In this document: one piece after another, positions 1-60,945 of the stretch
How positions within the stretch are numbered: the stretch's first letter is position 1
How the letters are laid out: each line of letters begins with the position of its first letter
From: Thalia democratica
Taxonomy: Eukaryota
Length of the DNA stretch: 64,000 nt
Assembly: GCA_965202585.1 (NCBI GenBank)
Contig: OZ241828.1
Location: 15,066,001 to 15,130,000, forward strand
Direction of reading: 5' to 3'
Notes under the pieces: model-generated
Told to the model about the DNA's origin: nothing
The model's database searches: none
Seen by the model: only the letters and a program-made list of their open reading frames with translations
Translations under genes and position numbers: made by a program

Positions 1-3000
1 TGTCATAAACTTATTATGTAATAAACTTCATTTGAAAAATATATCTGAAACAGTTTATTTATAGTCGGTTTTGCATTAACCTAGTTTTCGGTTATATTCT
101 TTAAATGCTTTTAACTGTTTTATTAATTATTAAGAACAAAGAGGTCAAAAACTAACCGAAAATTTCAATGAAGTTATATTAAAAAACAAAAATATTGATT
201 TCTTTTTATACGAAGAAAACTAAATTCGCATTCAATTTCCAGCTAAGTAATTACAATATCACTACAAAAAAGACTTTTTTTTCATTATTTATAGGATGGT
301 TAACGTAAAACAACTATAACAAAAAAAAAAAATCAAAGACTTGAAGCGGATTAAAACTTAAAAATGGCTTGTATTGATTCAAAGTCTGTAACAAAAATTT
401 TTCTGTTAACCAGTCATAAACTTGTTTATAAACATACATTTTAATTATAGTTAAAACAAATTTAGGTTATGCTGAAAATACGTCAACAATCTTGTTTGTT
501 TCACAAATACAGCTTTATTGAAAAATCATTCAATCAAATTATTATAGCACAATAAAAAACCTATGCACGAATTTTTTTCTCAAATCAAATGAACTCATAG
601 CCAAAACTAAAATTTATTTTGTTGCTCGAGGCCAACATTTTCATTTTTTTACGAAAATAGCAAACTCAAACAAAACGTCAGCTTTATTTTGACGTGTTGG
701 AAAACAAAAACGAGTAAAACTTGAGTTTTTCGAAACATTTTTGACAGCCACTTTTGAAATGATTAAATATACTTTTTTGCTTCAGGAATATAAAAATTAA
801 TTATTAAGTGTTTTGATGAAAAGTAGAACATTTTCTTACTATAGTTTGTTTTGTTTGGATTTTTTTTTCAACTAGTTTATGCTTGATGAAAAATTTGACT
901 AATAAAATAAATAAACTAAGTTTTACAAAGACTAAATACTTTATACTTGTTACTTGTCAAATTTCTAAAAATATTCTTTTAAATCATAGTTTACGTGTAA
1001 CATACTATTTACTCATACTTTCAAAGTTTATTCTTTTTAATTATAAAACTATACATACAATATTTCATACTTATTATGTTTCAATAATTTAGTAAAAGTA
1101 TCTTTCGAACAAAAGTCTGTTTGTTAAATTAAGTTGTTTTAATTGAGACCATGTTGAAAAAATACTGCTTGAAAAACATTTAACTGCAAAACAACCCACT
1201 TAAAACTTGCATAACAATTCAAATTGCAATAAAAATTACGAATGGAAACAATTTTAATTTGTTTGAACTCTGTCCACACTTAAAAACAAATTTCACATAT
1301 AACTTACTAAAAGTTTACTGCAAAATCTTACATGTTTATTTGTATAAAATTGAATTTTGTACTAAATTTGTACAAAATGTTTAAGTTAGAATAAAAGGTT
1401 ACAAAAACAAGTTTTATTTGTTTAAACTTAAGACTATTTAATTATATTTCTTGCAAATATTGAACAAAGAAATTGATATATTTAAAAAAAAAGCCTCTAA
1501 AACGTGTTAAGTGTTATCATGTCATAACAAAAACAATAATAAACAAAAGCTGTTGAAAACGTTACAATATCCGCTTTTGTGATGTCATAGAACTTGTTTA
1601 CATTTAATTGTTCGCATAAGTCACATATTTCAAAATAAGTCTACAAGTCTCATGAATTTTATCCAGATGTACCTTCTTTATACAATTTACAATTTGTGTG
1701 TAAGTTATTAATCATTTTGCACAACTTTTTATTTAAAGTAGTATTATTGGAATCAATTTTTCAAGTTTTTTATCAAATTTTTTGTCGAACTATATAAATT
1801 TTCTAATGACAAAATTTCAAGTAAAAAAGAAAAATATAGTTTTGTTTTAATATAATACATCGGTAACACAAGACGAGTTTCGCGGTTTCCAATTACTTTG
1901 TTATTCTAGAAAATGTTTTTATTCTAACCATCTCTGTTTACTTATTTTGCTTTGTCACGTAAAAACATCAACAAACAATGTTTTACGGAAAATACGAGTC
2001 TATGTTTTGTCTACAAAAAGGTAGTGAATTTTTACGACTTTTGTAACACAATATATTTTTTACAATGTAACCAACATATTTTGTCGACAACTCCGCAAAG
2101 GTCGTGAAAACAAAGCTGTTATAATTTGACAATGGACGACTTTTATGACGTAATAATGCAAATAAAACAGCATGTAGTTCAGAAAACTTGAAAACAACAT
2201 TTATTTGTATAAACTTAATTCGGTTTGAAAGAAAATAACAACAACTTTTCTTTAACAAAATACAACCTTATTTAAATACCAGATTTAACTTTATAATAAA
2301 GCACAAATGAAGTAAAAAACAACTGGAATGAAAAATTCACTTTGATTTATGTTCATAACTAAACAAATTACTTTAAAAAAATTACTTGATATTATAAGTC
2401 TTTATAAAGAACACTATTATACAACTAAATTTAAGCCTTTTTTTAATTAATTGATACCATAAACTAATACAATTTAGGCAAATACGTTAAAGCTGTTTAA
2501 ATTATATATATATGACACATCCAATTATTTTATTTCCAAACGTAAGAACTGATATTTAACCTTTAACTTTTGTACTTGAATAATCTCACTTAAACTAGAA
2601 TAAACTTTTGATTAATACTTACTCCAATACTTTTTAATTGTTTTTAATAATGTTATTGGCACGTTTAAATAAACTACTTGATAATAAAATGCCTCTCAGT
2701 CAGTTTTTTTATAGTGACATAATATTCAAAACTAATCTATATACTATTTCACAGTTGATAATTGTCAGGTTTCTTTGCAGTTTAGATTAATGCAGCTAAA
2801 ATTCTTGAAAATACTTTTTTGATTAGAACAAAACCCTAAAAATATACAATTTTTATAGTTTGAAAACTAGTCATTATAAATTAATTAAAATGTAACCTAC
2901 AGTATTACGGATACTTAAAAGCTCTTTGGTACTATTTAGATTTTTTTTGAATTATCTGAATAAACTATTAAAAAAAATCACAAAGTATTGTGTTTTAGAA

Positions 3001-20600: not shown

Positions 20601-23600
20601 TATTATAACTTTTCTTTAAAATATTTCTCTTATATTTTTAACTTGAGTCATGCGAGCTTATTTTAAAAAGTCACGTAAGACCTTATTAAAGTACTAAAAA
20701 GAACTAATTTTTTTAGATAAGTAGAAAAGTAATTCCATTAAAATAACTAACAGAGCTTCTGGGCTGCGGGGTCTTGAGAACCACCAACGGGATGTTTTCA
20801 TCGTCCGACTCGTCTGAGCTTGACACCAATTCGTTTTCCTTGGTAGATGCGTCTTTAACAGGACTGATCGGTTCTTGTTTGACCAGGAAAGTTTTGTTTC
20901 CAGTCTTGTCTTTGGTGTTTGAATCGCTCGGTACAACTTTAGTGGGACTTATGGGCTCTTGTTTAACTGTGAAAACTGGTATCTTTTTAGTTGAAGTATT
21001 GTCCTTTGGATTGCTCAAAGGCTCTTTCGTTGGAGTTACTGGTTCTTGCTTCACCAAGAAGGTTTTACCTCCAGTAACCGTTTTATCTGTACTGCTTGGA
21101 GCGTCTTTAGTGGGAGTAACTGGTTCCTGTTTAATAGTAACATTAGCATTAGCTATACTTGAAGTATCTTTAGTGACAGTTTTGTCCTTTTTGCCAAGAC
21201 CTCTCGTTTTTCTAGTTCTAATCCTACCTGACGCAATATCTACCACAGCTTTATTATTCGATGCCGATTTTGTCTTTGTTGTTTTGCAGTTGTTATTCTT
21301 ATCTTTAGCTGTGGTCTTAACCTTTTTAACATTGCTTTTTGGTTTGGATAAAACTGGTTTATCTAATACTGGAGTTACTAAAGTTTTAGTTTTTGGCTCT
21401 ATTGGCTCAATTGCTTTCATTGTTGGTTTATCTTTTATTTCCTCTACAATTTTAGCATCGTTACTGGTTGTAATATTTTCTTTTGGCTTTGTTGCTTTGT
21501 CAATCTTAATGTCTTGTGTTTCTTTTCCATCAATATCATTTGAAGTTATTTTATCATTTGCATCCAACTTTACAGGTTCTGAGTTTTCTTCAACCTTTTC
21601 ATCACTAATTTTTACAATCTTCTTATCTGAATTGCTCGTCTCTGTAACAGTTGCTTCAACCTTGGCAGTATCAGCTTCTGCAACTTTCTCTTTTTTTACA
21701 TCTAAAGTTTTTTCAACCGTAATAACATTAGTTTCTGCTGCTTCAACTTTTTTAACATCCGGTTTTTTCTTCAAACAGATCAACGGTTCGTCTTCACTCG
21801 AATCTCCGGAAGTTGAGAACTTCTCAGGAATCAAGTTCGAAGACACCGAGTCGTTGTCTTCGGTGTTGACTGTGGAACAAGGCTCTGACTTGTCAGTGGG
21901 ATTTTCTTCTGTTTGCGCCTTGGTTGAAGGGTACAAGTCTTCGTCGTCGTAAGAAGGTAGGGAGCTTTTAGATGAAACCTTATCACTTTCGTCAGGAAGT
22001 AAAGGATTTTCAGATTTCAAATCTTTAGATGATATTGTTTCAATCTTTTCAGGAAGATTAGATTTTTCTTTGGACGGAACTTTGCCGCTTTCGTTAGGAA
22101 CAACATTCGAACTAGAATCTTTCGATGACGTTGTTTTACTCTCATCATCTAATGAACTTAACTTCTCAGTTGCTTTAGAAGCAAATTCTGTTTCCTCAGA
22201 TTTATCGCGCTCGTCTGGAACAATACTTGAATCTTTAGACGATGTCGTTTCAATCTTATCAGAAACAGAAGTATTTTCATGCTCGGGGTCTTTGGAGGAT
22301 GTTGTTCCAGCATCTGCTAAATTCAACTTCTCAGCGACTTTCTTAGAAACTGGCTCTGTTTGTTTGGATTTTTCAAAATCTTCAGACAAAGCTGCTGTAA
22401 CTTTATGGTTATCTTCAGAACAAACTTTCGAAGGGAAAGAACTTTTGGTTGTGATGTTAGTATCAAGTTTCTCAGATTTCTCTTCTGTAGTACTTTCATT
22501 GTCTTTGGATGAAGGCAAGGAATTTTCTTCCGAGGCTTCAGGAGAAAGCTGTTTTGATAAACAATTTTCAGTTTGTTCAACTTTTTCTAATGTTGTTTTA
22601 GCAGAAAGCGTCTCAGAAACATCCCTTTCTGAAGTGTGTGCATCATTTAATGTTGAAGGTAAAGAAGTTTTAACTGAATCTTTTGGAGAAATGTGATCAT
22701 CATTATTTGTTGGTATACTTTCGGATTGACTTTTAACTTTCTCAACTGTAGGTGTAGGGATTTCATCAGCAACTTCAGATGGTTTGTCAACAGCTGCTTT
22801 TTTCTTATTTTTATTTCTTAAAGTTCTACCTGTAACCTTTTTCAAGTCGTCTTTTGTTGAAGTGTCAACCTTGTCAGACACGGGAACTTTGTCTTCAGCA
22901 GAAACCAATTGATCTTCAGGTAAAGGTTTAAACTCAATAAAAGTTTTAGACGGTTTGTTATTGGCTGTTTGTTTCTTATCTACAGTTTCTAACGAACTAT
23001 CAGACATAGTTTCTGAGGTGTTTTTAGTCATTGCTACAGAGTCAATCTTTACTTCAGCTGTTAATGAAGTTTGGTTGTCTTCTACTTCAAGTACAAACTT
23101 TTTATCAACCTTATCAGCTGATAACTGTTTCTCTAACTCATTATGAACAGGCAAAACATCATTTTCAGAAATATCTTGGTCCTTCACAACATCATTTTGA
23201 GTAGGTTCAGTTTCTTTAGCACATTCAATGACAGTATTAGATTGAACAACTTTCGCTATTTGCATTGGTTCTAAAGGTTCAGGTGTTTCAGAAACAACTT
23301 CAGAATTTTCAGAAACGACTTCAGATTTTTCAGAAGCGACTTCAGATTGCTCAGAGACAACTTCAGATTTTTTTGAAACAATTTCAGATTTTTCAGAAAC
23401 AACTTCAGATTTTTCAGAAACGACTTCAGATTTTTCAGATACAACTTCAGATTTTTCAGAAACAACTTTAGGTGTTTCAGAGACAGCTTCAGATTTTTCA
23501 GAGACAGCTTTAGAGTTTTCAGAAACGACTTCAGATTTTTCAGAAACAATTTTAGGTGTTTCAGAGGCGACTTCAAGTTCTTGGTTGATCTCTTCAGGTT

Positions 23601-26600
23601 GTTTAGAAATTAAAACATCCTTAGTGACATCTTTATCAACTAGATTTAAACTGTCATCAATTTTGCTTGTTCCAACACTACTCTTTACTTTTTCATCAGC
23701 TGTTAAATGTGAAACAGCAACTTTTGGTGGTTTTGAAACACCTTTTGTCACTTTTTTACCTTTTTGTGTATCAACTGTTTTTTTGACAGTTTCTATTTCA
23801 CTTTTTGAAGCTGGTTGTTTGGAAACTTTTATTTTACTTTCATCAGGCTTGTCAGCTTCTTTCTTTTCTTTATGGTGATCAACAACTGTTTTCTTGTCTG
23901 TTTCAACACACTTTGAAACTTCTTCAGTACTTTTAGCTGTTTTTAGTGGGTCAACAGCATTACTTGAAGCTTTACTAGATTTAAAAACTTTCTTTTTACC
24001 TTGAAGAGAACCAGAAACATCTCGTGTAACTTCAGCAGGTTCCTTATTATTTTGATCAAGTGCTTTTTTATCTGCTGCAACATGCTTTGTTGGTACCTTA
24101 TTGTTTTTAGGAATTTGAACGACCTCTTTTGATGGTGGAATCAGTGTTTCTATACCCTCAGCTATCTCAAAATAATCAAAACCAACTTTGGTCATTTCTT
24201 CAGCCATTCTGCAAAGCGGGCCTTTGTTTTTGCCCGTGAAATCCTTTACAGTTTGGTGCAATTTTCTGTTATTTGTACTACTCTTAGGCTTGACAGGTTT
24301 TTTGGACTCTTTTTTATTTTTTAGTGGATCAGGAACAACTTTAGCCATTTCCTTGTTTACTTTGACTGATAAAGCCTTGCCTTTCAGCAGATTAGCTTTG
24401 ATGGTTTTGTTGGGTATTTTTTGCTTGGTAGGGCTGGCCAACAATTTAACAACCTCTTCCTGCTCGGAAGACATGAGCATTTCGAAAACGTTTCTTTTCT
24501 TCACTCCTTTGTTGGTTAACAGAGACTCTTTTGTGGAAGTTTGATCGCTCGTCGGTACTTCTTTAGGCTTCTCACTTATTTTTACCGGACTAGTTTTAGC
24601 TGAAATTTGTCCAGACTCTCTCGGCGGAGACATACTGAGCCTGGCGAACAAGCCCTGATCAGGAACAGACTTTATGCTCACTGAATCTTGTACTTGCTTG
24701 GCCTTTTCCGAAATTTTAACCGAAGCAGCTTTAACACTGTTCTGTTCGAGCATGCTGAGTTTGGCAAACAATCCCTGATCCGAACTAAACTTGTTATCGT
24801 TACGCTTTATGCTATTATTACACTTCAAAGGACTTTTAAGCGCTTCTCTTGCTTTCGAGGCGAAAACGTTCTTCTTCTTGATGGAGTTCTTGCGCGGCCG
24901 CTTGCACTTGGTGGGGCTCTTGCACACGGCCAGGCCCAGGATCGGGTCGGTGACGTCATAGTTGCTCTGCTGACGCGCTTCGCCGGTCACGACGCGCTCC
25001 TTGGCAACGAAACCCTCCGTGCTCTGAATGGCCTGCTTGATCTTGTCCTTGTTCAAGCTTTTCAAGTTCTGGAACAGCTGCTGGGACAAGTTGGACGACG
25101 ACTCCGAGTTGTTGTCGGAGCTTGAACCGAGGAAGGTCGTCATCTCGTGCACTTGCGAGAAAGTGACGTCCAGTTGCTTTTTGGCAGGAACTTCTCCGAC
25201 ACTTTTGCAGGTCGGTTGATTGTTTTGCGCTTCCTGCTCTTTCAAACTGGCGCTATTTTGATTTTTCAAGTCATCTCTATTTAGTTGTTCTGGTAAAGCT
25301 TCAACCGACTCCAAACAGTCCTCAATTGGCACTTTACTTTTCTTCTTGCTAGCGGCATCAAGTGGCAAAGAATCCTTCTTGGCTGTTGTTTCATCCGAAG
25401 TTTTTGAAGGCTTGTTTGTGATGGCTACTAATTTTTTGTCAGATTTCTTTTTAGTAACCTTAGTTTTAACAAGCAAGTCGTCAGTAGACACTTTGCTGGT
25501 CTTTGTAGAACTTTCAACTTTATCTTTCTTGTACTTATCAGAAAGTGGTTGAGCTGTAGCACTTTTGTTTGTATTTTTTGTCGCATTGAGAACTTTTCTA
25601 TCCGCTTCAACATTCTTGCTTGTCACAGAAACAGCAGCGTGACCCACAGCGTTTGCGTCAAAAGCAATGGGGTTTATTTTCTCATTGTTTTCAGGTTTCT
25701 TCTTCACAATCTGGTAGTCGAGAGAGTCGTTGCTCTCAACGTTTTTAATCAACCTCAGAGGAGTCACCGTGTCCTTTTCAAGCTTGTCAGAGTTTTCAAA
25801 CTTTTCCACCAACGTTTTGACGTTAACCACTTTGAAAGGGGTGAACTGGTGACTTTTAATTTCGCCAGAGTTTTCAGAAACATTTGGTGTATTTTTTACC
25901 TCTTTGACTAGTTTCAAAGGAGTGACTGTATTCTTTTCAACATTATCAGAAACATTATTGACTGTTTTATCAGCGAAAGACATGTTTATTTCGTTTTGCA
26001 CAATTTGGTCTGTCATTTCATTCAAAGTGATACTGACATCCAATTCGGTCTCTGCAATTTGAGACTCTTCTACAGTTGGTGGATTGTTGGACTTTTCAGA
26101 TCGAGTTTTAGCAGAATCAGCAAATTTGGTAGCTTCAGGTGTTCTTACGTCGTCAGGCTTGTCTGTCACAGCTGTTTGTTCAAACTTATGGGAAGCTTCT
26201 TTCTCAATTTTACCTGAATCAGACAAGTCTTTACCAGGCGAAATCTCCGCACTATTGTCTGAAACTTTAGGCTTGGAGCGCAGTGTTTTCTGAGGACTAA
26301 CTTCATTTTTATTTGAAGCAGCCTTGGAAGGCTGTTTTTCAGACAAATCAGACTTGGTTTTACTGACATCAGTATTTTGAGACTTTTGTGGTTTAGAGAC
26401 TGCTGAAGGCTGTGTGACAGTCAAGTTAGGCTTTTTAGTTTCAGATTTCGTGTGCTCAGACTCTGAAGGCTTCTTTTTGCAAACGTGCCCTTTTGGAGCC
26501 TCTTCAGCAACTATCTGTTTAGGAGAATGTTGTTTTTGAAGATTTTCCAAAGAATGCTTCTCAGCAGGTTTGTTCTCCCTGACTTTTGAGTCATTGTTAA

Positions 26601-29600
26601 CAACTTTTTGAGGCTTGTTCTCAGGCAAATCAGACGTTTTAAAGCTGGTTTCAGTTTTTGTTGACTCAATTTTTTCTGAAGGTTTTTTGCGAAGTTCCGT
26701 AGTAGTTTTAGAGCTTTCCACATCCTTTGACAAAGAATTTTCAGGCTTGGAAGGACCTTCAACGTTCTTCTCCTGAGCAGTCTTTAAAACTACTTCTTTT
26801 CCTTCAGAACCACTGGACTTCTTGCTGGTATTTTTGTCCTGAACACTAGAAGATTTCAAGTCTTCGTGCTGTGACATGCTCCTCGTTCTAGATCTTGACC
26901 GCCTTTCACTTCCAAGTTTTCCTTTCGAGCCAGATGAATCACCTTTTACTCGAGATCTACCTCTTTCGGAAGCAACGGGTTTAGTGACGCTTTTCTGGCC
27001 CTGCCTCGTCCTTGAAACAGACCTGGATCTGGTCTTTTGCAGGCGACTGGATTTCAGGTCTGTTTTGGTCACTAACTTATTAATCAAAGAGCCGCTTCTG
27101 CTGCGAGTAGCGGTTTTAGCACTAGGCCCAGTAGGTTTCGACTCAATTTTTTTCTTGTAGTTTTTACCTGTCTCAAGGCAAATATCCGGCTTTTTCGGGT
27201 CAACTTCCACAGCCTTCTCCGAAGAGCTGTTGGAGTTGGAAGAATTCGATTGTGAGTCGAATTCCGGTAACTGATCAACTCCCAGCCTTTCATCAATTTT
27301 TTCCTTGTTGACCCTGTCAACCTCTTCAGCGTTATTTTTGTTGCCTTCCTCGCAAACGCTCTGCCGCGTTTGGCTCCTCGTCCTCTTCCTTTTCATCCTC
27401 TGCTGTTCCTCCTTCTCCTTTTTTATCTCCAGACTGATCCTCCTTTTGGTGGCCTCCAACTTCTTTATGTAATTCGTCTTTTCGGGACTTTTCGCTTTGA
27501 AGCTCTCAATTTTTTTCTCCAGCTCCTTCTCCATTTCTCGTTTTTTGAGAATTTCCCTCACTCGTTCGGTGTACTTCAAACTTTTGTCTGTTTCAGCTTC
27601 CCCCACCACGACCGAGCCCTTTTCTATCTGGCTTCTCGTCGATCTGGTCCTGGGAGACGTCGGCGCGAAACTTTCTGCGAGCTTCTTCCTACTCTTAGGG
27701 TTGTTTTCTCCCGAGCCGTCGAAAAATTTGACGCTCTTCTTGGGAGAAACACCTTTTTTAGGAGAAAATTCAACCTGATTTTTCTTTCTGGGGCTTTTTC
27801 TTGTAGGATTTTTAGAGCTTGCTTCGGAAGATTTTTCCTGCAACTGATCAATACCCAGCCTTTCGTTTAATTCTTTTTTATTTTTGTTACTTTCTTCGTC
27901 ATCTGTGTTTTGGGCGTCCAGTTCTTTTCTGTTGTAGTGGTAGGTCTTCCAATTTCTGAAGAACTTCCTACATCTAGACATCCTGTTTAAAAATTTTAGT
28001 AATTAGTACATTTTATATTTTCAAAGTTTTACTTAATTGTATAGTTTTAGACCTAAATCTATTTGATAATTAAACGTATATATAAACCATGTTTTTTTTC
28101 AAAGTTTGTTAACTATAACAACAATTAGATTATATAGACAAAATAAACAAATTAATAAACAGCTATATAGCTTATATTTAAAGCTAAGTTGAAATAAACA
28201 AAAAAAATTATAAAACACAAGTAGTTAATATATATTATCAGTTATGAGCTAGGATTAGTATAAAGAGTTTTTTAACAGTTTGCCCATAGCAAAACTAAGT
28301 TTTAATTATTCGTAAGTGTGGAGACCTAAGGAGACTTTTATTAAACAATTTGAGCTAATTTTGAATGAGAAGATATTTAGATATAAATTCAAAATAAAAA
28401 AGTATTTACACAACTTTTACATTTCTTACACTTAGATTTTTTCTTGATTAAGTCAATAATTGTCCAAAAAACTTTAAGTTATGACGTCAGCAAACTGAAA
28501 TGTTTGAAATATAAAATTCGTTTTCAAAGTTTTTTGTTTCAATTAGTTTTACTTAAGGCTTTGTGTTGAACGTTTTTTATTTTTGTGTCTATTTGGAATA
28601 CAGTTTAGCTTTGTGTGTTTTAAGATAGGAAAAATGTCGTTCAGAAGACTCAAAATTAATTCGGAGAATCCAGTTTTGAAGAGTTTGATCAAAACCGAAA
28701 AAGATGAACTGACTTTAATGGCTAGGTTTAAATTTCAAGACAATTTTAAAAACTTTTTATCTTTTTTGCATAAATTAGCATACATTAACATCTTAGTTAA
28801 GCATAATATTTTTTTTAATAGTAAATATTGAATAGTTTGGTTTTGGTACTGGTTTTAATTAAAAAGTTTAAACATAACTGACTCATTTTCAAAAAAAAAG
28901 TTTATTTATTAATTTCGTTTAGCTCTTTTCAGAATAACATTGCTAAAAACTATGAATATTGTAGAGTAATTTTAGTTATATATAATGAATTTGAAAAGTC
29001 TAACAAAAAATAGTTACGTCATAAAGAATAAAAGTCTGTTTAGAAAAAGTTTGAAAAATAGAATAGAGCTATACTGAACTAACTTAAAGTAATTTATAAG
29101 ACAAAATTGCTAAAACAAAAACATTTAAAATAGTATAAATTTTTACCTTAAACTAAATTAAATAAAAAGCACATTAAAAATACGACAATAACAACAACGA
29201 AAAATAATACTACTAAAGACCCTATTTGTAAAGTTTTAAATTGTAAAAATCTCTTTGTTTGCAAATTTTTGGCTCGCGAGATCTAATAAATAGAGATTCT
29301 AGAACTGAAAGATGGTAGGTGTTTCTAGCTCGGGATAGGATTTCGAACCTATTATCCAGGTAGTTCTCGGCACAAACAGGGTTGTTGAGGAGGTGCTGAT
29401 TTTGTCTTATAAATTACTTTAAGTTAGTTCAGTATAGCTCTATTCTATTTTTCAAACTTTTTCTAAACAGACTTTTATTCTTTATGACGTAACTATTTTT
29501 TGTTAGACTTTTCAAATTCATTATATATAACTAAAATTACTCTACAATATTCATAGTTTTTAGCAATGTTATTCTGAAGAGAGCTAAACGAAATTAATAA

Positions 29601-32600
29601 ATAAACTTTTTTTTTGAAAATGAGTCAGTTATGTTTAAACTTTTTAAGTAAATATTGCATTATTGCATTGCTTTTTTATTCTGTTTGTCTGATTTAAAGC
29701 TTGAAAATATACTTTGCAGTTTCAGCTCTACGAAAATCAAACCTAAAAATGAGAAAAAGAAAGTCAAGCAACAAGAAAAAGTTTGTTAAGACTTATCTGT
29801 TTTGATCAGTTTACGAGTTAAACTTCAAGTTATTCTAGAAGCCGTATTACCTTCATTATTTTGGTCAATTTCAAATATTCAAGTGACAATACTTGATAAG
29901 TAAAGATTTATTAAAGCTTGTTTATCCAACTGTTTCTAAATTTGTTTATACCAAGGTCATTGTTTTGCTTATTATTACAACTTTTGAAAATTGCTATTAC
30001 AACATAAATAATAATAAATAATACAAGCTTTTGACAAAAAACAGACATATGCAGTAGATACAAAATTTCTACTTTTCCAGGTGTTTGGAAACCCGAAAGC
30101 TATTAGACTGATTCAAAGTATATCACAGCAATCAAACAGGCATGTTAACCACAACAACAAGAAAATAAATAAAATCACGAAACTTGACAAATTAAACAAA
30201 AAATTAAATAATCAAGTTCCACAAGTTTGTAGCGGTCCTTTAAACAGCGGTAGAGTTAATACAAAAGTAAGAAGCTTGCACAAGTTAACGTCGGCTATAA
30301 AGTTGAAGTTTAGTGATCAAAACATTAATAAGAAAAAAGTTACTTGGGTAGACCAAGTTAAAGGATCGAGCATTGCAAAGTAAGTTTAAATAATATTTGG
30401 TAAATTATAGGCAAAACACTTTGAATTTTGACTTAAAAATATAGATTATCTTTTATTAGTTAACATCTTACGCTTTATACTTTATTTATAGTAGATACAG
30501 AATAAAAGATAAGAACTTAATATATTTTATTTTAACTTGATTTTTTTTAGTTATTTATTAATAATATGTATTAACTTTCTTGGTTTATTTTTTAATTTAG
30601 ATACAGTACGATGATTTACGACCACAAATTGAGGAAGTTCAGAGAACAAAACGAAAACGAAAATATTGACGACATAACTACGACTTCTACTTTTCATTGT
30701 AATTGCAGGTAAAATTAAAATATTCCATGTTAAAATATTAGTTAACAAGAGATTTCAAAAGAGTTTGTTTCTCTATTTTTATACAAATTTAAAACATTAA
30801 AGAGTATGTACTTTCTGTTGTCATTCAGATAAAAGCATTTGAATTAATTTGGCAATTAACCACAATTAATTTTACTAATTTTTGTAAAAGAGTAACAGTT
30901 TTTTTAAAGTTCTGTACTAGTGTGAAGCTTATATCACATTGGATAAATTTAATTTATAAACGAATTTTTTCCGTTGTAATTCAGGTAAAACCTTATTGTG
31001 ACTTCTGCGCCAATTTATCACGAAAGTTTATTATGACATCACTAATGAAACATTGAGTCATAACTATTACGTCATAGTAAACGTTGTGCCAACCGAGTGC
31101 ACTTTAAGTTGTTTGTCGAGCAAAAACTTAATAAATTGAACAAATACTCGTATCTAATTAAATCTTGACAAACAAGTCAACTTAGTTTTCGTTTAAATTA
31201 CTCTTTAATTTTCATTAAACATGGTCAAATGTCATATAAGACTTATTGAATTGATAGATAAAATAGTTTTTTTTTTTTAATTCTTGAGATAAGTTTTGTA
31301 TCATTGTTATTATAATTTAATTTTCAGAGACATAAGAGAATGTCCATTGCAAGGCAGCTGTTTGTCGAAAAACATAAAGTTCAAGATAAAAGTGGAGAAC
31401 AACAACCAAGTTAAAACTTTTTACGGAACATGCAAGAACTCTACTTTTAAGAGCAGGTTCTATCAGATCAAGCATTTGATGAAAAATAGAAATATGACGT
31501 ACATGAATCCATTTGCGAGGTTAGTAAAAAAAATTATATATTAAACTTATGTCCATTTGCAAGTACAAGCTATGTGCTGTTATGTTGATTTTTACTGGTA
31601 AGTTGTTGTTTATTTGCTTAATTAATATTACTTGATGAAAAATTGAAGTATGTCGTACATTAGTCCATTTCAAGGTTAGTAATATTTAAGTATTTTTAAT
31701 ATAATAGCTTTCATATACTTCTTTGCAAGTTGAAATATTCTGTTCATTTTTCCTTGTAAATTTTGGTGAGTTTGCAAGGTTGGATGCAGTTTTTTGCAGT
31801 TCAAAATTACAATTACCAGGGAACCTTTTTCAATTAAAACCATAACAATAACTGTTTAAACGTTATCCAACTTTGTTGTTTGTAATGTAGCATTTGATCA
31901 AAGTTGGTGGTATTAGAGCGTTTTGCAGGGTAAATATTTCAAATTTGTTAAATTTCCACCATGATGAATGAACTTTTTCTTCAAGGTGTGCTGTAATTAC
32001 GAGGTCGTATAGGTGGGTTGAACTTTGAACGTTCAAAATGTTGACAGTTTGTAAAAAAAATAAGAAGTGTGTGTTATTGGTGTTTTAAATAAAAATAAAT
32101 AAACATTAACTCGTTTACAAGGTAGTCAATTGTACTTTTAGTTGGGTGCTTAAACTTTTGGTTTACAGTATTAAAACTGAGGAAAAGGACATTGTTAAAA
32201 CTAAATTATTTTATACATACATTTAAACTTAATCAATTTATGAGATAAACCATGTATAATGTATTGTAAATATGTGTTAATATGCTGTTGAGTCTGTATT
32301 TAGTTTTAGCTGTTTTTTTTTTTTGTAAAATTAGCTAAAAGCTATTTTCAGTAGGAAAAGATCAAAGAGTTTGTAATTGTGTAATTATGGTTTTGAAAAC
32401 TCATAATGTGTTTACAAACAGACAAAAAAGCCATTAACTCTCTCTAATCTACATCTCACACGTAAAAGGTGAAAACTTCACTTTTACAACAAGTTCAGAC
32501 AAAAAAAAATCCTACATAAAAGTTTGCTAACTTAACAAAGTTCAAGTAAACTCTAAACATAGCAACTTTGAAAAACTTCAGTATATTTATGTCTAAAACC

Positions 32601-35600
32601 TCTAAATGACCAAGTTTAAAAACCTAAATACTTATATATATGTTACTAAAAAAACAACATAAAAAAACAAGTAAATAAATTAGTAAGTAGTGGCTGTATC
32701 TTTAACAGTTGATAAAACATTTATAATCTGACGTACAAGACAATGTAACTTTTTATATAAATAATTCATGGGAGATTTAAAACAATTTCAGCCAAGTAAA
32801 TGGGTTTATTCAATTTGTTTCTTTTTCATAAGAAACTTTTCCTTCATTTTTAAATTATTTATAAACAACAAGATTTGGTTGGGGAAACTTTGAATAGATT
32901 TAGTAACTGGCCAAAATTTAAAATAAAACAACAAAATTTATCGACTTTAATAGCGACTAAAATAACTTTGAAGCTTATCTTAGAAATGAAACAGTTTTTT
33001 TTTTATTATAATTTTAAATACTTATGTCCAGCCTAAAGGCTTTTATCTAAATAGGGAAGTTTTAAATAGAAATTTTTATAATTTTAAAAGGCAAAAAATT
33101 ACATTGAAGAAACTATAAATTGATAAAAATCAATTAAAACTTAAATTTGATGATAACTAAATTTTCAATTTTATTTTCTTATATAAAACAACACTTTAAA
33201 ATAAAATAAATTGTTTTTGGTAAAATCTAAAATTCCTAATTCACAATTTCTATACTGAAACACATATATATTTAAACCTTATTATTTTAAGTCTATCAAA
33301 GACGTGGTATAAAAATAAAAGCAGCAAAAATAAAACAAACTGGTAAATAAACAAACTTTGTAAAAACAATGAACTTAGTTAAACAAACAAAATTGCCACG
33401 AGTTTTGTATGTAAACTTTAAACGAGCGAATAATTAGTATTTGCAAAACAAATAAATAAAAAAACACGAGTTAACTGGATTACTAGTTGTTAAATTCTTA
33501 GTTTAACTTATGATTTTAAATAAAAAACGGGTTTTATACATAAAATTATTTAAAATTTTACAAACAACCCAAACAAGTAATTTTTCGTTGAAACACGCAG
33601 ACTCAATATTGACGAAATAAATAAAAAGTCGGATTTACAAACTTAATTTTAAGAAGTAAATTTTCGGATTAAATTTTTTTCAACAGAATTATAAACAACT
33701 CAGAAAAAATTGTTTAATTTTTATACGTTACCCAAAACAAATAAACAAAAAACACGAGTTAACTGGATTACTTGTTAACTTTAAGAGAAACTTGCAGACT
33801 TTTTAATAAAATAATTAATTTTATACATAGAAATTATCAAAACTTTACAAACACCCAGAACAATTTGTTTTCCCTAAAAAAAAAATTCGATATTGAAAAA
33901 TAAATAGAAAATTGGATTTTACAAACTTAACTATAAGAAGCAAGTTTTCGGTTTAAAATTCTTTTCAACACAGTTATAAACAAGCAAAATTCGTTTAAAT
34001 TTCAACACGTAGACCAATAGGTTACAAAGAAGCGCAACTCGATACTACTCAAATTTCAGCAAAATTACTCAAATTTCAACTAACTAACGGGCAAAACGTT
34101 TTTGCTTTGTAAATAAATTCAAGTTAGTTCACACGCCAGGCGCAAAGTTTAAATTTGAACTATTTTATATTACTTAGCAAAAAACAATTTTTGGTTTAAA
34201 CAGCAAACTAAATAAAAACTGAGTTCAGCTGTTAACATTTAAAAGCAGATTAATAAAAAGTTAACAAAACAAAAATATAATGCATTTCAGCTCGAAAACT
34301 TGCCTAGTATTAACAAATCTATTCAAATTTGCTAAAATAAATTATTAAAAAACATTTGATTATAAGTAAGTTGTATAAATAGGAGTATGATATGTAGAAA
34401 CTCTATAAAATAAATAAAAAAGTAATTTATAATTTCAGTTGTTCTGCTTTGCTTTTTGTTTAATTATTTCTGTTTAAAACCTCAAAATGTTATCCAAAAA
34501 GTTTACTCAAATTTTGTCACGAGTGAAAAATATAAACTACTTGCTCATAACAAAATTTGTTCAAAGAAAGAAGTCTGTTAGTCGGATATAAAACAAACAG
34601 AGTAATTTAGCTTTTTCTGTTTGGTAATTTAGTCGCAAATAAGTGACACACAAGTCTCTTATTATCTTGCCAGCCAATTTCGTCGAAACTTTAAGAATTT
34701 ATCGATTCTTCAAGTTTCGACCGTTATATTGTTTGTCGTGGTTTCAGTTGTTAGTTACTTTTTTAGCTGTTTTTATTTGTTTCTTTTTATATGATTACTT
34801 TTGCATGTAAAAATGATGGTTTATCTTTTGTATGACTACTTTTTCCGAATATGTAAATTTGCAAAAGATAATTAACACAATCTTAAGAATACTTACATAA
34901 CTTTCTTTTAATCATATTTTTAATGTATAAAACCTAAAATTCAAAAATAAAAATGTTAACGTTTTAAAAGGTCAGGCTAATACATTACAGTTTGGTTTCA
35001 GTTTCATTTTGAGTGTGATTAATGTATATGCAGCTAGGTTAACTTTGTTTATTTACTCATTTATAACAAACTTTAATGACAGTATTTTCGTTTGTCAGCA
35101 TATAACGGTTTAAGTTTAAACCAACAAATAAATATATTCTATACTGGTAAAAATATACATTTTTTTAATAAAAACTATGATAATAAAACAAAGCGATTAA
35201 GACTTTACAACAGATAACCAACTATTTAACTGTTAAACCTATAAAATAAAAAACAAATTAAAGTTTCAACTTTTAAGCTTTAGTAACCAACCGCAAAAAT
35301 TTCAGTATTCATAACTCAAAACAAATAAAACACTAAGAAGTTTTATAGATAGACTTTAAATATATTTTACTTATACTAAAAACTAGCAAATAAGTTTTGT
35401 AACAAAAATAAACCAATTTTTCTTACATAAATTTCAAACCAAAAGTTCAAACTAAACTCATAGAATTCTTAATAAATCAAAAGCTTAACAAAACTTCTTT
35501 AAACTTTTCTTACTTAAATACACTGAAAGTTTGAAACCGGTAACTTTGTATTGAGTGTGTATAGAGAAAAAACGAAAAGTTTCTCTTGGTAATTCGAGAC

Positions 35601-38600
35601 TGTTACGTCATAGTTGACTTAAGTGAGAGAATTGCCGATTATATAGCATTGTGTGTGTGCGAAATTTTTGGTGAATAGTTTTCAAAATTATTTTTTAGGG
35701 AAAATATGAAGTGTATATGTGTGAACTGTAATTCACTGGGCTAAATTATTATCAACAGTATTGCTTATTAAATTGACTTAAAATACGTGAAACAAGCACT
35801 TTCAAACATAAGTCACTAAAATATAATACTTGTGTGTGTGTGTGTGTAATTCGCAAGGATTGTTTGACATTAACTTATTATGACCCTTGTAAAGTTTCCT
35901 GAATGGTAGTTTATGAGTTGTTTAGAGTCTAAATGTCAACAACATTTGTATGTTAAATATATATGTAATATTATTTTACTATTGTGTGTGTGTGTACTTG
36001 AAAGCCTTTTTTGTTTCTTCCATAAATAAAACTTTTTGATTTATCAAAAACGTCTCATTTAAATTGAATAATTAATATAATTAGTACGAGTTACTGGTTT
36101 GTTCCATAATATTCATGTAACAAAAGCTAAAAAATAATATTGTGTGTTAACAAGTAACTAAAATTTACTTTCTAGATTATTTTAACGTTGCTTATGGTTT
36201 ACTATCAACTTTAAAACTGACTTTATGCCAAGTGATTTTAATTTTTGTGCATAAATATGGTTGAAAAATAGAATTAAACTTTTTATTCTATTTGAATAAT
36301 TAATATAACTAATACGAGTTACCGGTTTGGTTTAAAATATTTGTGCAACAAAAATTAAAAAATAGTTATGTGTGTTTATAAGTAATTAAAATTGACTGTT
36401 TCACACTATTTTAATGTTGCTTATGGTTTACTATTAGTTTTAAAACTGACTTTGTGTAAAGTGGTTTTTGTTTTTTAAATGTTTATGGTTGAAAAATAAG
36501 ATTATAATTTGCTAGCCAATGTGTGTGTCTCTTTGCGAATCAACCTTAAATTGACCCTATATTGCGAACTTAATAAGATATTGTTTGCGTTGTATTATTT
36601 TAAATTTTTCCTGAGAAAATGAGTGTTAAATATAAGTAAATTTGTGTAAAGAGTATTTCTTTTACTAAATAAATTAAGTTTAAACAGTTGCATTTCAAAA
36701 ACCAATAATTTAATCCTCTTTGAACAATGCAATTCTGTGAAAACGTAAAATTTAAGCGCTGCGTAACTTGATACGGCGGAAAATTACTGTTTAATATAAG
36801 TTCCCGCGTTTCAATACACAAAGCTGCAATTTATATGTGAGAGAAACTTTTTTTGGATAAAAGCTTTGCTGAGTTTAAGTATTTTTTTGCCTCTATCAAC
36901 ATTATTCTAACAAAACTTTAAAGTTTATTTATGTTAGGTTTTGACTTGTTACTCATCTTTGAATTACTGTCAAATGTAGCATCATATTTACTTCAATTCT
37001 TGTTTATATGTAAATACGCATATATGCTAATGCTTTGTTTGATAAAGTCTGCTTAGTGTTTTAATTTTGAATTCCTTGACGCTGAAATCAAGTTTTCATT
37101 AAATTTCATGAAGTATTTTGTAATATTTTCATTTACAGCAGCGTAGTAGAGACTTTAATGTTGATTGAAATAAAAAAAGGTAAATGTTCCGGTTTTAAAG
37201 TCTAGATAACTTAAACATATGTAAATGAAAAATAACTTATGTCTAATCGTAAGCTTAAATTTATATCTTGTTAAAAGTTTTTTGCGATTTTGTTAGCGCA
37301 AATTAAATTCAAACATTTTTATGTTTGAACATTGTTGCTGTTTAATTAGAAGTTATTTTGGGCTAAAGTTTTTGAAAACTAAGGTTTAAGAAAAATTAGT
37401 AAATTGCAGAATTAAATTAATTATTCTATAACTTATTTGATCGCACATCACTGATAAAACATACTTTAATAACCCAATTATCAAGCTAGATATAATATGG
37501 TTAATAAGTTAATAGTGGTTGTTAAATTATTTATTTAAGTCTCACTGATTTTTTGACTTCATCTGAACAGTTTAGTTCGCAATATTTGGCCTTTCAAAAC
37601 TTTTTGTGAAATTAATTTTTAAATTTAACTTTTTTTTTCTAGATACATCTGGAAACTTAAAAGGAAGAAGGAAAGTTTCGACGTGCAGTACAGAGTGGTT
37701 GACCAGCCTGCAGTCAGCACAGGTAGTAGTGGCAGCAAGAAATCGTGTTCGTGCAGAGTCAGAGTGAGCGGAAAGACAAGCAAGAAGGTGAAGAAATAAG
37801 AAGGGCAACAGTGGAAATTTTGTTCTTGTTTTTTTTTATTTGTCTAATATTTAGAAGTTAGTAACTTGAAAACAATAAAATGTAAAAAAACTGAAATTTA
37901 TTAACTTATGATTGCAATTAGTATGTTAATATTTTTATATATTTTATCTATTACATATTTATAACAAATACATAATGTTTTAATACAAAAAACATTCTGT
38001 AAATTTAAATAATCAGTGACTACTAATTATGAGTTAGAAAACTTAGATTGGTATAAGGTATTAGATCTTATTAAAAATTATTTAACAACCAAATAACAAG
38101 CTTAATAATACAAATTTAAAAACCTGTCGCCTTTTATCATTTATAATTCTAAAAAAACTTGAAATTATTATTTTAATTCACTAATTGCTAATAAATTAAT
38201 ATATTTTATTGTTTTTATATTAATCAAAGTAAATATTCAATATAACTTTTAAATACTAATTGTTAAACGAGTTCAGTTTAATGGTTATGCATTGAATGTT
38301 GCAAAACAAAAGAATAAAATATTTTATAAGCAATACAACATTTTTTCAACATTTATTACTGAAATATCATTTAAGCAAAACACAATCTGAAGCGCCTTAC
38401 TTAAAAGCCAAGCGTATAAACTAAGAAAACTTTGAAAACAAAACTGCAATCGAGTTTTATTTTTAATCAGCTCACTACCTGCAGCACGATGACACGAAGA
38501 AAAGTTTGCTTAAAAATATAATACATAATGGTAAGTTTACAAACTACTTGTAACATAAAAAGTTCTTCTTCCTTTTTAAAAAGTAGGCGTGCAAAATTTT

Positions 38601-58105: not shown

Positions 58106-60232
58106 TAAGCATCGCTTAAGGTGATTTATGATATATAAAACATACTTACTTTAACTAAACAAAAGTGAGCATGTTGTCAACTAAAATGCGAGTACTTTAT
58201 AGTGCGAAGCTTTTTTCCCGCATTGAAGCTTAAAAACTGAAAAAAGTGTTTTTATTGTTTTAAGCGCACAATGACGTCACTTAAATGCACACAAATTCAA
58301 AGATTATTTTGTGAAATATAATTGAATCCAATTATTATAATGACATTCAGTTCTAGAACTACATCTGAAAATTTGCAACGAGAAATCGATCTTTTATATC
58401 GTTCTCGTATTATTCGACCGAAGAAATTATCTGATAATTGTATTAAAAAAAACCCTGCTTAATTACTGAGCAGGTCAAGAAACTACATTATTCTTTGTAG
58501 AGTGTTTATTTTAAAAATGAACTAGGTAGCTATTTTAATGCAATTAAAAAAATTGTAAATAATAAAACGGCAATCCACTGTACATAACTTACATTCATTT
58601 GATATTTTTTCTACCTTTCTAAATTACTAGTTAAAAAAGTTGTTAGCTTTTACAAAATTAAGTTAAAAAATAAAGTTAGCTTTTTAAAGAGAATTTTAAC
58701 ACACCACGTAATGTATGCTTATGCTTTAGACATTGTATTTTAATTAGTTTGAATGATTATATTTAGTTTTAATAATTATCTACTAATTATTAGTAAAAAT
58801 AATAAACTAAACCTTTACAACTTATTTACACTTATTAAATTGAGTAATACAGTTTTTTGTCTACTTTTGAATAAAAGGAACTTTTCAGAAATAAAAAAAT
58901 CTATTCAAGTTTCTTGCTGATATAATTCCTTTAACTTCATTTTTCTAACTTATACGAGAATTATACAAATCATCGCCCTTTCTTAAATAAATTGAAAAAA
59001 AAGTTATAAAGTTGTTTTATTCATGAAAAAAGATATAAAAGATCAATTTCTCGTTGTAAATGCAATTACATGTATTTATAAATATATAAATAGAAAAAGA
59101 TAATGTTTTTATTAAACAAAAGTGAACTAGAACTTGTTATTAAAACGTCAGTAAACTTTTACAGTAAATAACTTTTTTTGATAATTCTCTGTTTAAAGTT
59201 TGAGACTTAAAGTTTTAGGTTTTAAAATTTACTGTTTTAATCTAAAATAATTTTCAATTTTTTTTTGCAAACATGCTTTATGTTAATGAATATAAAGAAA
59301 GTAAAAATTTCTAAAAAGTTTTACAGCATAAATATTATATTTTAAATGTAGTTTAAAGATTGAAGTTGAATTATAAAATATTAATGCCGTGCTAAAAGGT
59401 AAAACTATTAATGTTTAAGTTTTAAAAGGAAACTATGTAATAAAATTAATCACATAAAAATTATTTCTCTGAATAATTTTTTTTTATTACCAATGTCTTG
59501 TTCTTGCATAATTAACTTCATAAACATCTTTTTTTATTGTGTGTCAGTTTTATAAAAACAAAAATGAACATAAAATACATTTCGGTTAGATAAAAATTTT
59601 ATATTATACTCCAGTATTTCATTCAAAATAAATCCTAATGAAACCAATTCCAAAAAATGCCTATATTACAAAAATTACTTAATTTTGAAAAACTTTATCT
59701 ATTAACAATAAAATAGTTTTAGCTAGTATGTTTTTATTAGTTTTAAAAACCACTTGGATTCTAAATCATTTTATTAAAATAATCAAAGAATAAATTGTAA
59801 ATTATATTTAAATAAACAGCGTAAATATTAGGCGTTTTTAGACTTTACTGTATTAGTAAGATGAATAAGACGAACCCATTCTTTTAAAGAAATTGAGTTG
59901 TTTTATTTATTCAGTAAAATAGTTATTTATTTTTTTTGTGTCTTGGTTAAGAGCTATATATTATTGGTTTTAAATTTATAGCGATACTATCTTAGGTAAA
60001 AACTAAGTTAAAGTGAAAAGTGTTTTTTTAGTATCTTTAAATTCGAAAATTCAACAAAATTATAAAAAAATTGAAAAACTGAAAAACATAAATAAAAATT
60101 TTATTAAAAAGCTAAAGTTATTTAAGTAGAAATTCGAAATTATAAAAAACAATTTTACTTTTATTTACCATTTTGTTAAGACTAAGGTTTTCTCGCTTGA
60201 TTTATTAAAGTTATAAATAAATTTTTATTTTC

Positions 60233-60945
60233 AAATATAACAAAATACAATTCGTTTTTCTTAAATTTATTTGAGTACTTTCGTTGTAAGGCTCATCAGA
60301 AAATTTATCATACTAAGTTACGCTGAATTGAAATTGAAATAAAATTATAATGTAGTTTAAGTTATAAAATATAAAATCACGTAATAATCGATTTTTAATA
60401 CTAACTAAAAACTTCTACCATAGAACGTTACTGTACTAATAAAACTGGATAGATTAAAATCAAACTAAAATAAACAAGCGATAAAAATGAAATTAAAACT
60501 ACACTTAAATATGTAGTTGAAAAGATTTCTTTGCTTTAACTAAGACTAAAAAGTTCTCCTTTTTATATTTTTTAGCAACTAATGCTGCCCAATCGCTGAG
60601 AAGTATTTTTTGTTGGTTTCTGCGAACGACTACCAAACCAACTATTCAAGATTTTCGGAACATGCTGATCGATTCTTACATGAAACCTTTGAGATGATTT
60701 TCCCACATAGTCACTAGTTCCGTCGTGGTACACGAGTTTTATTAGTACAGCAAAGTTCTATAGTATTAGCTTTTAGTTAGTTTTAACATTCGATTATTTC
60801 GTCATTTTATATTTTAAAACTTTATTATATATGTAATTTAATTTCAATTTTAATTCAGTGCAACTAAGTAAGATAAAACTTCTGTTTAGCCTTACTACGA
60901 AAGTACTCAAATAAATTAAAAAAGAAAAAGTATTTTGTTATATTT
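60233..60945 (-). mobile_element. Older degenerate Penelope-like element with inverted arms (about 60233-60446 and 60735-60945)
   Basis: Diverged inverted arms of about 210 bp. The loop (minus strand, 60734-60505) encodes YVGKSSQRFHVRIDQHVPK, then after frameshifts SAIGQH* and LVKAKKSFQLH, which are GIY-YIG remnants. Confidence 0.85.
60260..60310 (-). ncRNA. Minimal type-I hammerhead ribozyme with intact core, in the left arm of the second PLE
   Basis: CUGAUGA, G.CCUUACAA.C, GAAA, palindromic GUAC, UC. The right-arm copy (60882-) is decayed to CUGUUUA. Confidence 0.75.

Follow-up and report, generated by a model that had tools for sequence, protein, structure and literature searches.

Canonical Penelope-like elements (PLEs) that encode an endonuclease (EN+ PLEs, of the Penelope/Poseidon, Neptune and Nematis types) carry a reverse transcriptase (RT) and, at the C-terminus, a GIY-YIG endonuclease, are heavily truncated at their 5′ end and reach high copy numbers (PMC8557442, PMC4209133, PMC11167929). 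An inverted 5′-truncated copy, adjacent to the 5′ end, and a one-sided tail of 30-40 bp are typical (PMC8557442), tails at a single end being a general PLE feature (PMC8557442, PMC11167929). The elements also carry a terminal hammerhead motif; in Schistosoma, paired hammerheads are found on opposite strands, 100-700 bp apart (PMC4209133). Motifs of this kind, with a stem III made of a single A-U pair and a palindromic tetraloop, are active only as dimers of two sense copies and are weak in vitro (PMC4209133). The element described here is carried by a 64,000-nt stretch of the genome of Thalia democratica (assembly GCA_965202585.1, contig OZ241828.1, positions 15,066,001 to 15,130,000 of the forward strand). 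This whole stretch is called the window, and all coordinates are counted from its first nucleotide. The region 28831-29647 (element e1) is considered, with a probability of about 0.85, to be a single 5′-truncated EN+ PLE insertion, dead on arrival, in an intron of a USP44/49-like gene. The one mismatch between its two arms would be neutral and its hammerhead motif would have no local role.

An inverted repeat (28854-29107 and 29399-29652; 99% complementary, spacer of 291 nt) was found by a repeat search. Pairwise alignment of the 249-nt arms, 28859-29107 and 29399-29647, gives only one mismatch, T at 28927 against the complement of G at 29579. The latter position is G8 of the CTGAAGA box (core 29574-29580) on the plus strand of the right arm; the left arm, in minus-strand sense, has CTGAAAA, A8 being the complement of 28927. 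The preliminary description of this locus, made from the window alone, had reported two 249-bp arms whose sole difference is at G8, and both the repeat search and the alignment confirm it. An 11-nt exact direct repeat, AGTAAATATTG, is found at 28820-28830 (left copy of the target-site duplication, (A)GTAAATATTG) and at 29647-29657 (right copy); the left copy directly adjoins the tail and the right copy the right arm, with a chance probability of about 3e-4. Since the duplication abuts both ends, the tail, the 540-nt main copy and the 249-nt inverted copy are one integration, 28831-29647.

The main copy is on the minus strand. It includes a 28-nt tail (28831-28858); the left arm, which is the distal 249 nt of the 3′ untranslated region (UTR) (28859-29107; hammerhead-like motif at 28900-28947 with A8, H17 at 28907); the proximal 3′UTR, as given by translation and by alignment with the Tara contig L002 through the 3′UTR (29108-29224; stop codon 29222-29224); and the last 58 codons of the RT-endonuclease open reading frame (ORF), that is, the C-terminus of the GIY-YIG endonuclease (29225-29398; 5′ truncation at about 29397-29400). 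The right arm (29399-29647, plus strand) aligns in inverted orientation with the final 249 nt of the PLE 3′UTR; this copy is 5′-truncated and has no tail. It includes a hammerhead-like motif with all 11 core bases (29559-29606), the core lying 48 nt from the arm end. The tail is carried by the main copy only: three Tara contigs (L002, L018, L020) match the main copy 24-28 nt further than the repeat boundary (TTAAAACCAGTACCAAAACCAAAC...), the inverted copy is devoid of this stretch, and family contigs diverge at 28828/28831.

The assignment to PLEs is given by the loop between the arms, whose minus-strand frame reads QHLLNNPVCAENYLDNRFEILSRARNTYHLSVLESLFIRSREPKICKQRDFYNLKLYK*. This 58-residue remnant has 825 phmmer matches among 1.8 billion representatives, the best one (91% identical) from a Tara Oceans contig; a Pfam search with the 58 residues alone found nothing significant. 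The long matches P0039 (841 aa) and P0067 (682 aa) have RVT_1 followed by ...VIYKFxCxCxxxYVGRxSQR..., characteristic of the PLE GIY-YIG endonuclease, and the remnant aligns at their extreme C-terminus. Over 28300-30200, contigs from marine metagenomes and from two whole-organism runs were compared: their depth is 25,000-190,000 over the element and 50-250 in the flanks, which corresponds to a family of roughly 10^3 copies. Many of the family contigs run beyond 29397-29400 into other sequence (...GAATAGATGACTGTTCACC...); the loop and the left arm are therefore the 3′ part of a longer minus-strand element. The contigs L002, L018, L019 and L020 also carry head-to-head partial copies, whose truncation points differ and which share the 3′UTR, the hammerhead block and the tail with the element.

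The locus thus has an RT and GIY-YIG ORF (through the 58-codon remnant), a 5′ truncation with an inverted copy adjacent to it, a tail at one end and a terminal hammerhead motif, all of which are found in canonical EN+ PLEs. It differs from these in keeping only the last 540 nt and the tail. The proposal that the arms are PLE 3′-terminal sequence with a hammerhead-type core and a palindromic loop 3 is supported. In the window, two full-length PLE proteins used as tblastn queries matched coding remnants of PLEs at 28831-29647 and at a second, older element (e2, described below) only; none were matched in 30330-37799, for which a nested GIY-YIG gene had been suggested. A plus-strand ORF at 31296-31544 (...CPLQGSCLSKNIKFKIKVENNNQVKTFYGTCKNSTFKSRFYQIKH...) has a loose likeness to the GIY-YIG motif; it was unmatched in this search. 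One PLE-bearing locus (P0004) is found on 10-25 kb contigs in five marine metagenome assemblies (L012-L016), so the organism that carries it is widespread in plankton samples of the ocean.

A two-strand priming origin may be proposed by analogy with a PLE of Anolis: its protein cuts each of the two target strands and extends them, and it begins reverse transcription at two neighbouring internal sites, which mark the limits of the tail (PMC11167929). The endonuclease would cut both target strands, and reverse transcription would be primed on both from the 3′ end of the element RNA. One complementary DNA, begun at the distal start site, would keep the 28-nt tail and extend over 540 nt (3′UTR and last 58 ORF codons); the other one, begun at the internal start site, would extend over 249 nt. 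Head-to-head joining of these two 5′-truncated products would yield the inverted arms of 249 nt, the 'loop' of 291 nt and a target-site duplication of 10-11 bp. Both arms would have been copied from one source and hence would have been identical at insertion, with one C>T change (plus strand) occurring later in the main copy. Three positions of this copy (29027, 29071 and 29291) depart from the state of most family members; as the arms differ at one site only, both carry the 29027 and 29071 states and derive from one source. The hammerhead motif would be a relic of the element's own RNA processing, with no role at the locus.

The direction of the change at position 8 was checked against the family. 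L002 (CUGAGGA), L018 and L020 (both CUGAAGA) and the inverted copy all have G8, and C at 28927 is found in 8-9 family contigs per run. G8 is therefore ancestral and A8 derived, by a plus-strand, non-CpG C>T transition. C>T is the commonest change in this genome of 26% GC. According to counts over the region of the element, G/C sites vary about 2.4 times as often as A/T sites. With that weighting, a single substitution in either arm strikes one of the 11-14 core positions with a probability of 5-7% (4-8% over the weights tried), and a strike in the core of the host-sense arm has half of this value, 2-4%. In a family of about 10^3 copies, many such core strikes should arise by chance in each genome. 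The position of the mismatch is no more than chance.

Some points weigh against a neutral, dead-on-arrival insertion formed in this way. The tail (28 nt) is slightly shorter than the published 30-40 bp. The two-strand priming origin is taken from the biochemistry of another PLE and was not observed at this locus. The short contigs come from many family copies, so T at 28927 is unconfirmed for this locus, and a single event leaves room for selection.

Alternatively, the arms could be identical in at least one haplotype, the mismatch being due to heterozygosity or to an error of sequencing or assembly; this is unlikely. Both T and C are read at 28927 (C, 496/1183 and 827/1339 of the depth in the two organism runs). 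Assemblies are known to have difficulty with inverted PLE structures (PMC8557442), and in the flank the other haplotype differs by about 10%. However, the C contigs may stem from any of hundreds of family copies, T contigs are found in both runs, and one difference between 249-nt arms is as expected of a young insertion.

The flanks 28300-28650 and 29770-30160 are covered in the organism runs by two contig sets of like depth, one identical to the window and the other about 10% different and containing indels, which points to either very high heterozygosity or a second, divergent haplotype. In each organism run, a single contig (depth 44 and 54, i.e. that of a single haplotype) joins 28812 to 29709, omitting 896 nt, and may correspond to an insertion-free allele.

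The other explanation concerns the host gene. A minus-strand USP gene has ZnF-UBP-type exons at about 44.7 and 43.3 kb, a Cys box at 19156 and a QQDA box at 6085; an acceptor (...tttttaaacag/G) is found just upstream of a 7.3-kb exon (20713-27981, minus strand). From this exon layout, the element is in a USP intron and its main PLE copy (A8) is in USP sense. The intronic location, supported by the ZnF-UBP exons, the acceptor and the Cys box, and the sense of the A8 copy relative to the USP pre-mRNA are both as first described. The exon at 20713-27981 is a single open exon of 2,422 codons, low-complexity and K/S/E-rich, with short tandem peptide repeats (SEKSEVVSE...); it is preceded by the ZnF-UBP exons (about 43-45 kb) and followed by the catalytic exons of USP, with the Cys and QQDA boxes.

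It had been suggested from this arrangement that selection removed self-cleavage from the USP transcript: purifying selection in the host would have fixed G8A in the USP-sense arm, ending its self-cleavage, and the plus-sense arm would stay active. In favour of this, the sole mismatch is on an essential core base of the USP-sense arm, and G8 is ancestral. However, the event is single and is a common transition, its prior probability is the 2-4% given above (4-8% for a core strike in either arm over the weights tried) and the family has about 10^3 copies. Furthermore, both motifs are sequestered in a hairpin. The 819-nt minus-sense RNA folds as one 249-bp hairpin (-407.8 kcal/mol; shuffles, -130; z = -42.6), in which the G8/A8 site is the only internal mismatch, and whichever strand is transcribed, the complement of the hammerhead precedes the hammerhead in the transcript. 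The isolated motifs have minimum free energies no better than those of shuffles (z near 0), nested folding being blind to dimers and pseudoknots. A stem III of 1 bp also requires dimerisation, whereas each transcript includes one sense copy, and PLE minimal hammerheads cleave poorly in vitro even as dimers (PMC4209133). Given the hairpin and the need for a second sense copy, neither arm would be expected to cleave in host transcripts, whatever base 8.

The second PLE remnant also argues against selection. Sequence comparison gives e2 (60230-60951, main copy on the minus strand) as an older remnant with the same geometry as 28831-29647. Its arms are 78-86% complementary, and its loop (about 288 nt) encodes on the minus strand a frameshifted GIY-YIG sequence, ...DYVGKSSQRFHVRIDQHVPK.... 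In e2 the minus-sense core is the intact one (CUGAUGA-GCCUUACAAC-GAAA-GUAC-UC; core at 60299, minus strand) and the inverted copy, in plus sense, has a degenerate core, CUGUUUA. The pattern is thus the opposite of that of 28831-29647. Selection on the USP transcript is left unsupported by this set of observations and is regarded as very improbable. If true, the purging of an intronic ribozyme by the host would be a rare instance in which selection acts on one catalytic nucleotide of a ribozyme carried by a transposon; the observations lend this reading no support. The element is most simply a dead 5′-truncated fragment that decays neutrally, G8A being neutral as well.

A miniature inverted-repeat transposable element or foldback DNA transposon with terminal inverted repeats can be dismissed as extremely improbable: the inverted repeats are long, near-perfect and terminal, and the target-site duplication is short, but the loop encodes the C-terminus of a PLE RT-endonuclease ORF, the ends are asymmetric (28-nt tail on one side only), other family copies run from the loop into the rest of the ORF, and the truncation points of related copies differ.

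Two other identities were rejected. Metazoan non-LTR (long terminal repeat) retrozymes are, like this element, hammerhead-bearing, PLE-derived and non-autonomous (PMC7229834; bioRxiv 10.64898/2026.07.22.740005); those elements are tandem direct repeats without ORF, whereas the locus has one inverted pair, an ORF remnant and no direct repeats. A tRNA-derived short interspersed element (tRNA-SINE) was rejected as well, no tRNA being found in the window by ARAGORN; the tRNA-like GGTTCGAAATCC in the loop belongs to the endonuclease ORF. A long hairpin-forming inverted repeat is also found at 358-716 of the related locus L022, about 1.8 kb upstream of a PLE ORF remnant; it has many weak Rfam matches to miRNA precursors on both strands and is probably another inverted transposon structure.

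The hammerhead-like motif of the right arm reads, on the plus strand, GTTATT-CTGAAGA-GAGCTAAAC-GAAA-TTAA-T-A-AATAAAC. Its parts are the 5′ strand of stem I (29569-29573), which pairs with the 3′ strand (29600-29604); the CUGAAGA box (29574-29580; G8, 29579); a 1-bp stem II with a 7-nt loop (29581-29589); the GAAA box (29590-29593); and the palindromic loop 3 (29594-29597), followed by U16.1 (29598) and H17 (29599). A candidate pseudoknot strand is found at 29559-29564, its partner being 29583-29588 in loop II. The cleavage site predicted after 29599 was correctly placed. All 11 core nucleotides (C3, U4, G5, A6, G8, A9, G12, A13, A14, A15.1 and U16.1) and H17 are found in the plus-sense arm (29574-29599). 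The minus-sense arm does not have the full core, its A8 being found without the covarying U3. The plus-sense copy had been called intact; this holds for the 11 core bases, but not for the motif as a whole, which is devoid of a stem II and has no Rfam hammerhead match at E<=10.

The pattern CUGANGA-(7..17)-GAAA with G...C linker ends is found twice in the window (0.015 expected), and the full hammerhead descriptor once (0 in 200 simulations); a hammerhead-like core is therefore present beyond chance. The 3′UTRs of e1 and L002 are 75% identical, yet their 11 core and 9 linker bases are all identical; N7 differs and H17 changes from A to C. Loop 3 changes from UUAA to UAUA, a double change that leaves A-NNNN-U palindromic. 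This comparison indicates a core kept by selection during the history of the family. Scans aimed at further copies gave none: IMG/VR has 0 matches to the core pattern, and the scan of JGI metagenomes for CTGANNAGAGCTAAACGAAA gave 8 loci, all of them chance matches without homology outside the pattern and none a family member.

Stem II is the unusual part of the motif. In e1, the space between A9 and G12 is 9 nt (GAGCUAAAC), with no stem past G10.1-C11.1. A stem II of at least 2 bp failed in 8/8 instances; only G10.1-C11.1 (or G-U) closes the linker of 8-11 nt. Linkers of 8-11 nt with G as the first base are found in e2 and in L003, L021, L022, L023 and L025, whose motifs lie beside ORFs of distant PLE relatives. 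Stem I is 5 bp long in e1; in L003, L021, L022, L023 and L025 it has 3-7 bp whose sequences are unrelated, so that pairing is kept by covariation. Stem III is palindromic in e2 and in these relatives (GUAC, ACGU, AGCU, AUAU), except in L023, which has a stem III of 2 bp. The latter is a full-length PLE (P0067, 682 aa) from a marine metagenome, with identical hammerhead-like motifs 5′ and 3′ of the ORF (39-70 and 2798-2830; direct pseudo-LTRs); this motif has a linker of 8 nt, a stem I of 7 bp (UUAUGAA/UUCAUAA) and a non-palindromic stem III. Rfam gave no hammerhead match on the locus (E<=10), in the 64,000-nt window (gathering score) or in six related loci (E<=10).

The best upstream complement of the linker, 4-6 bp long, ends 8-9 nt before C3 in 6/7 of the lineages compared. 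The pairs are UUUAGC/GCUAAA, UCGCA/UGCGA, UGAU/AUCA, UGAC/GUCA, GCAGC/GCUGC and GCUGAC/GUCAGC; L002, of the e1 family, has a 4-bp linker match at the same place. The summed match is 33 with the native linkers and averages 22.3 when linkers are swapped among lineages (P=0.0016 by exact permutation, the sample being small). Pairs were counted by script; the linker lengths of the six motif instances are too unequal for MAFFT alignment. These matches suggest that loop II pairs with the 5′ flank of stem I as a pseudoknot replacing stem II. An intermolecular stem II as in maxizymes was ruled out, the linker not being self-complementary.

Metazoan PLE minimal hammerheads, which are of type I and act as dimers (Cervera & De la Pena 2014, PMC4209133), share with this motif the CUGANGA and GAAA boxes, G10.1-C11.1, a short stem I and a stem III made of A15.1-U16.1 and a palindromic tetraloop. 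They differ from it by a stem II of 6-8 bp (1 bp here) and by an extra nucleotide between A9 and G10.1 (absent here); furthermore, the loop II of 7-9 nt seems here to be paired with the 5′ flank of stem I. A stem I/II pseudoknot occurs in about 40% of hammerheads in general, and a natural type II member whose stem II is a single pair cleaves fast (PMC3088659); among engineered miniribozymes, those with one G-C pair are active (PMC544870). A one-pair stem II and a pseudoknot of 4-6 bp in the stem I/II region are shared with these RNAs, which cleave fast in vitro. Those are bacterial or metagenomic type II hammerheads or synthetic, trans-acting RNAs, whereas the present motif is of type I, belongs to an animal retrotransposon and has no stable stem III. 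The 'HHR_core' of Naiad (Craig et al. 2021, PMC8557442) is also a CUGANGA-(7-17 nt)-GAAA pattern in a PLE 3′UTR, outside stem and loop descriptors; Naiad has an N-terminal endonuclease, whereas the relatives considered here have a C-terminal one, and their motifs show a candidate pseudoknot, covariation in stem I and a stem III that is palindromic.

A common architecture may be proposed for a clade of PLEs with C-terminal endonuclease, found here and among Tara Oceans relatives: a type I hammerhead with a stem III made of A-U and a palindromic tetraloop, a one-pair stem II (G-C or G-U), and a loop of 7-9 nt engaged in a pseudoknot of 4-6 bp with the 5′ flank of stem I. This proposal, drawn from sequence comparison, is tentative and more open to doubt than to acceptance. 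A PLE-clade hammerhead lacking stem II and probably pseudoknotted would be a modestly novel by-product of the analysis.

For the PLE family, 28831-29647 is a cleanly resolved insertion, whose duplication, one-sided tail, head-to-head junction and single-source arms match the two-strand, two-start-site priming shown in vitro for another PLE. Reviews describe canonical PLE hammerheads as lacking tertiary contacts (PMC6155905). If active, the motif would be a natural 'miniribozyme' that is missed by current descriptors and Rfam models, and not all canonical PLE hammerheads would be without tertiary contacts. This bears on the number of PLE ribozymes overlooked by current searches and on how structurally bare PLE hammerheads are.

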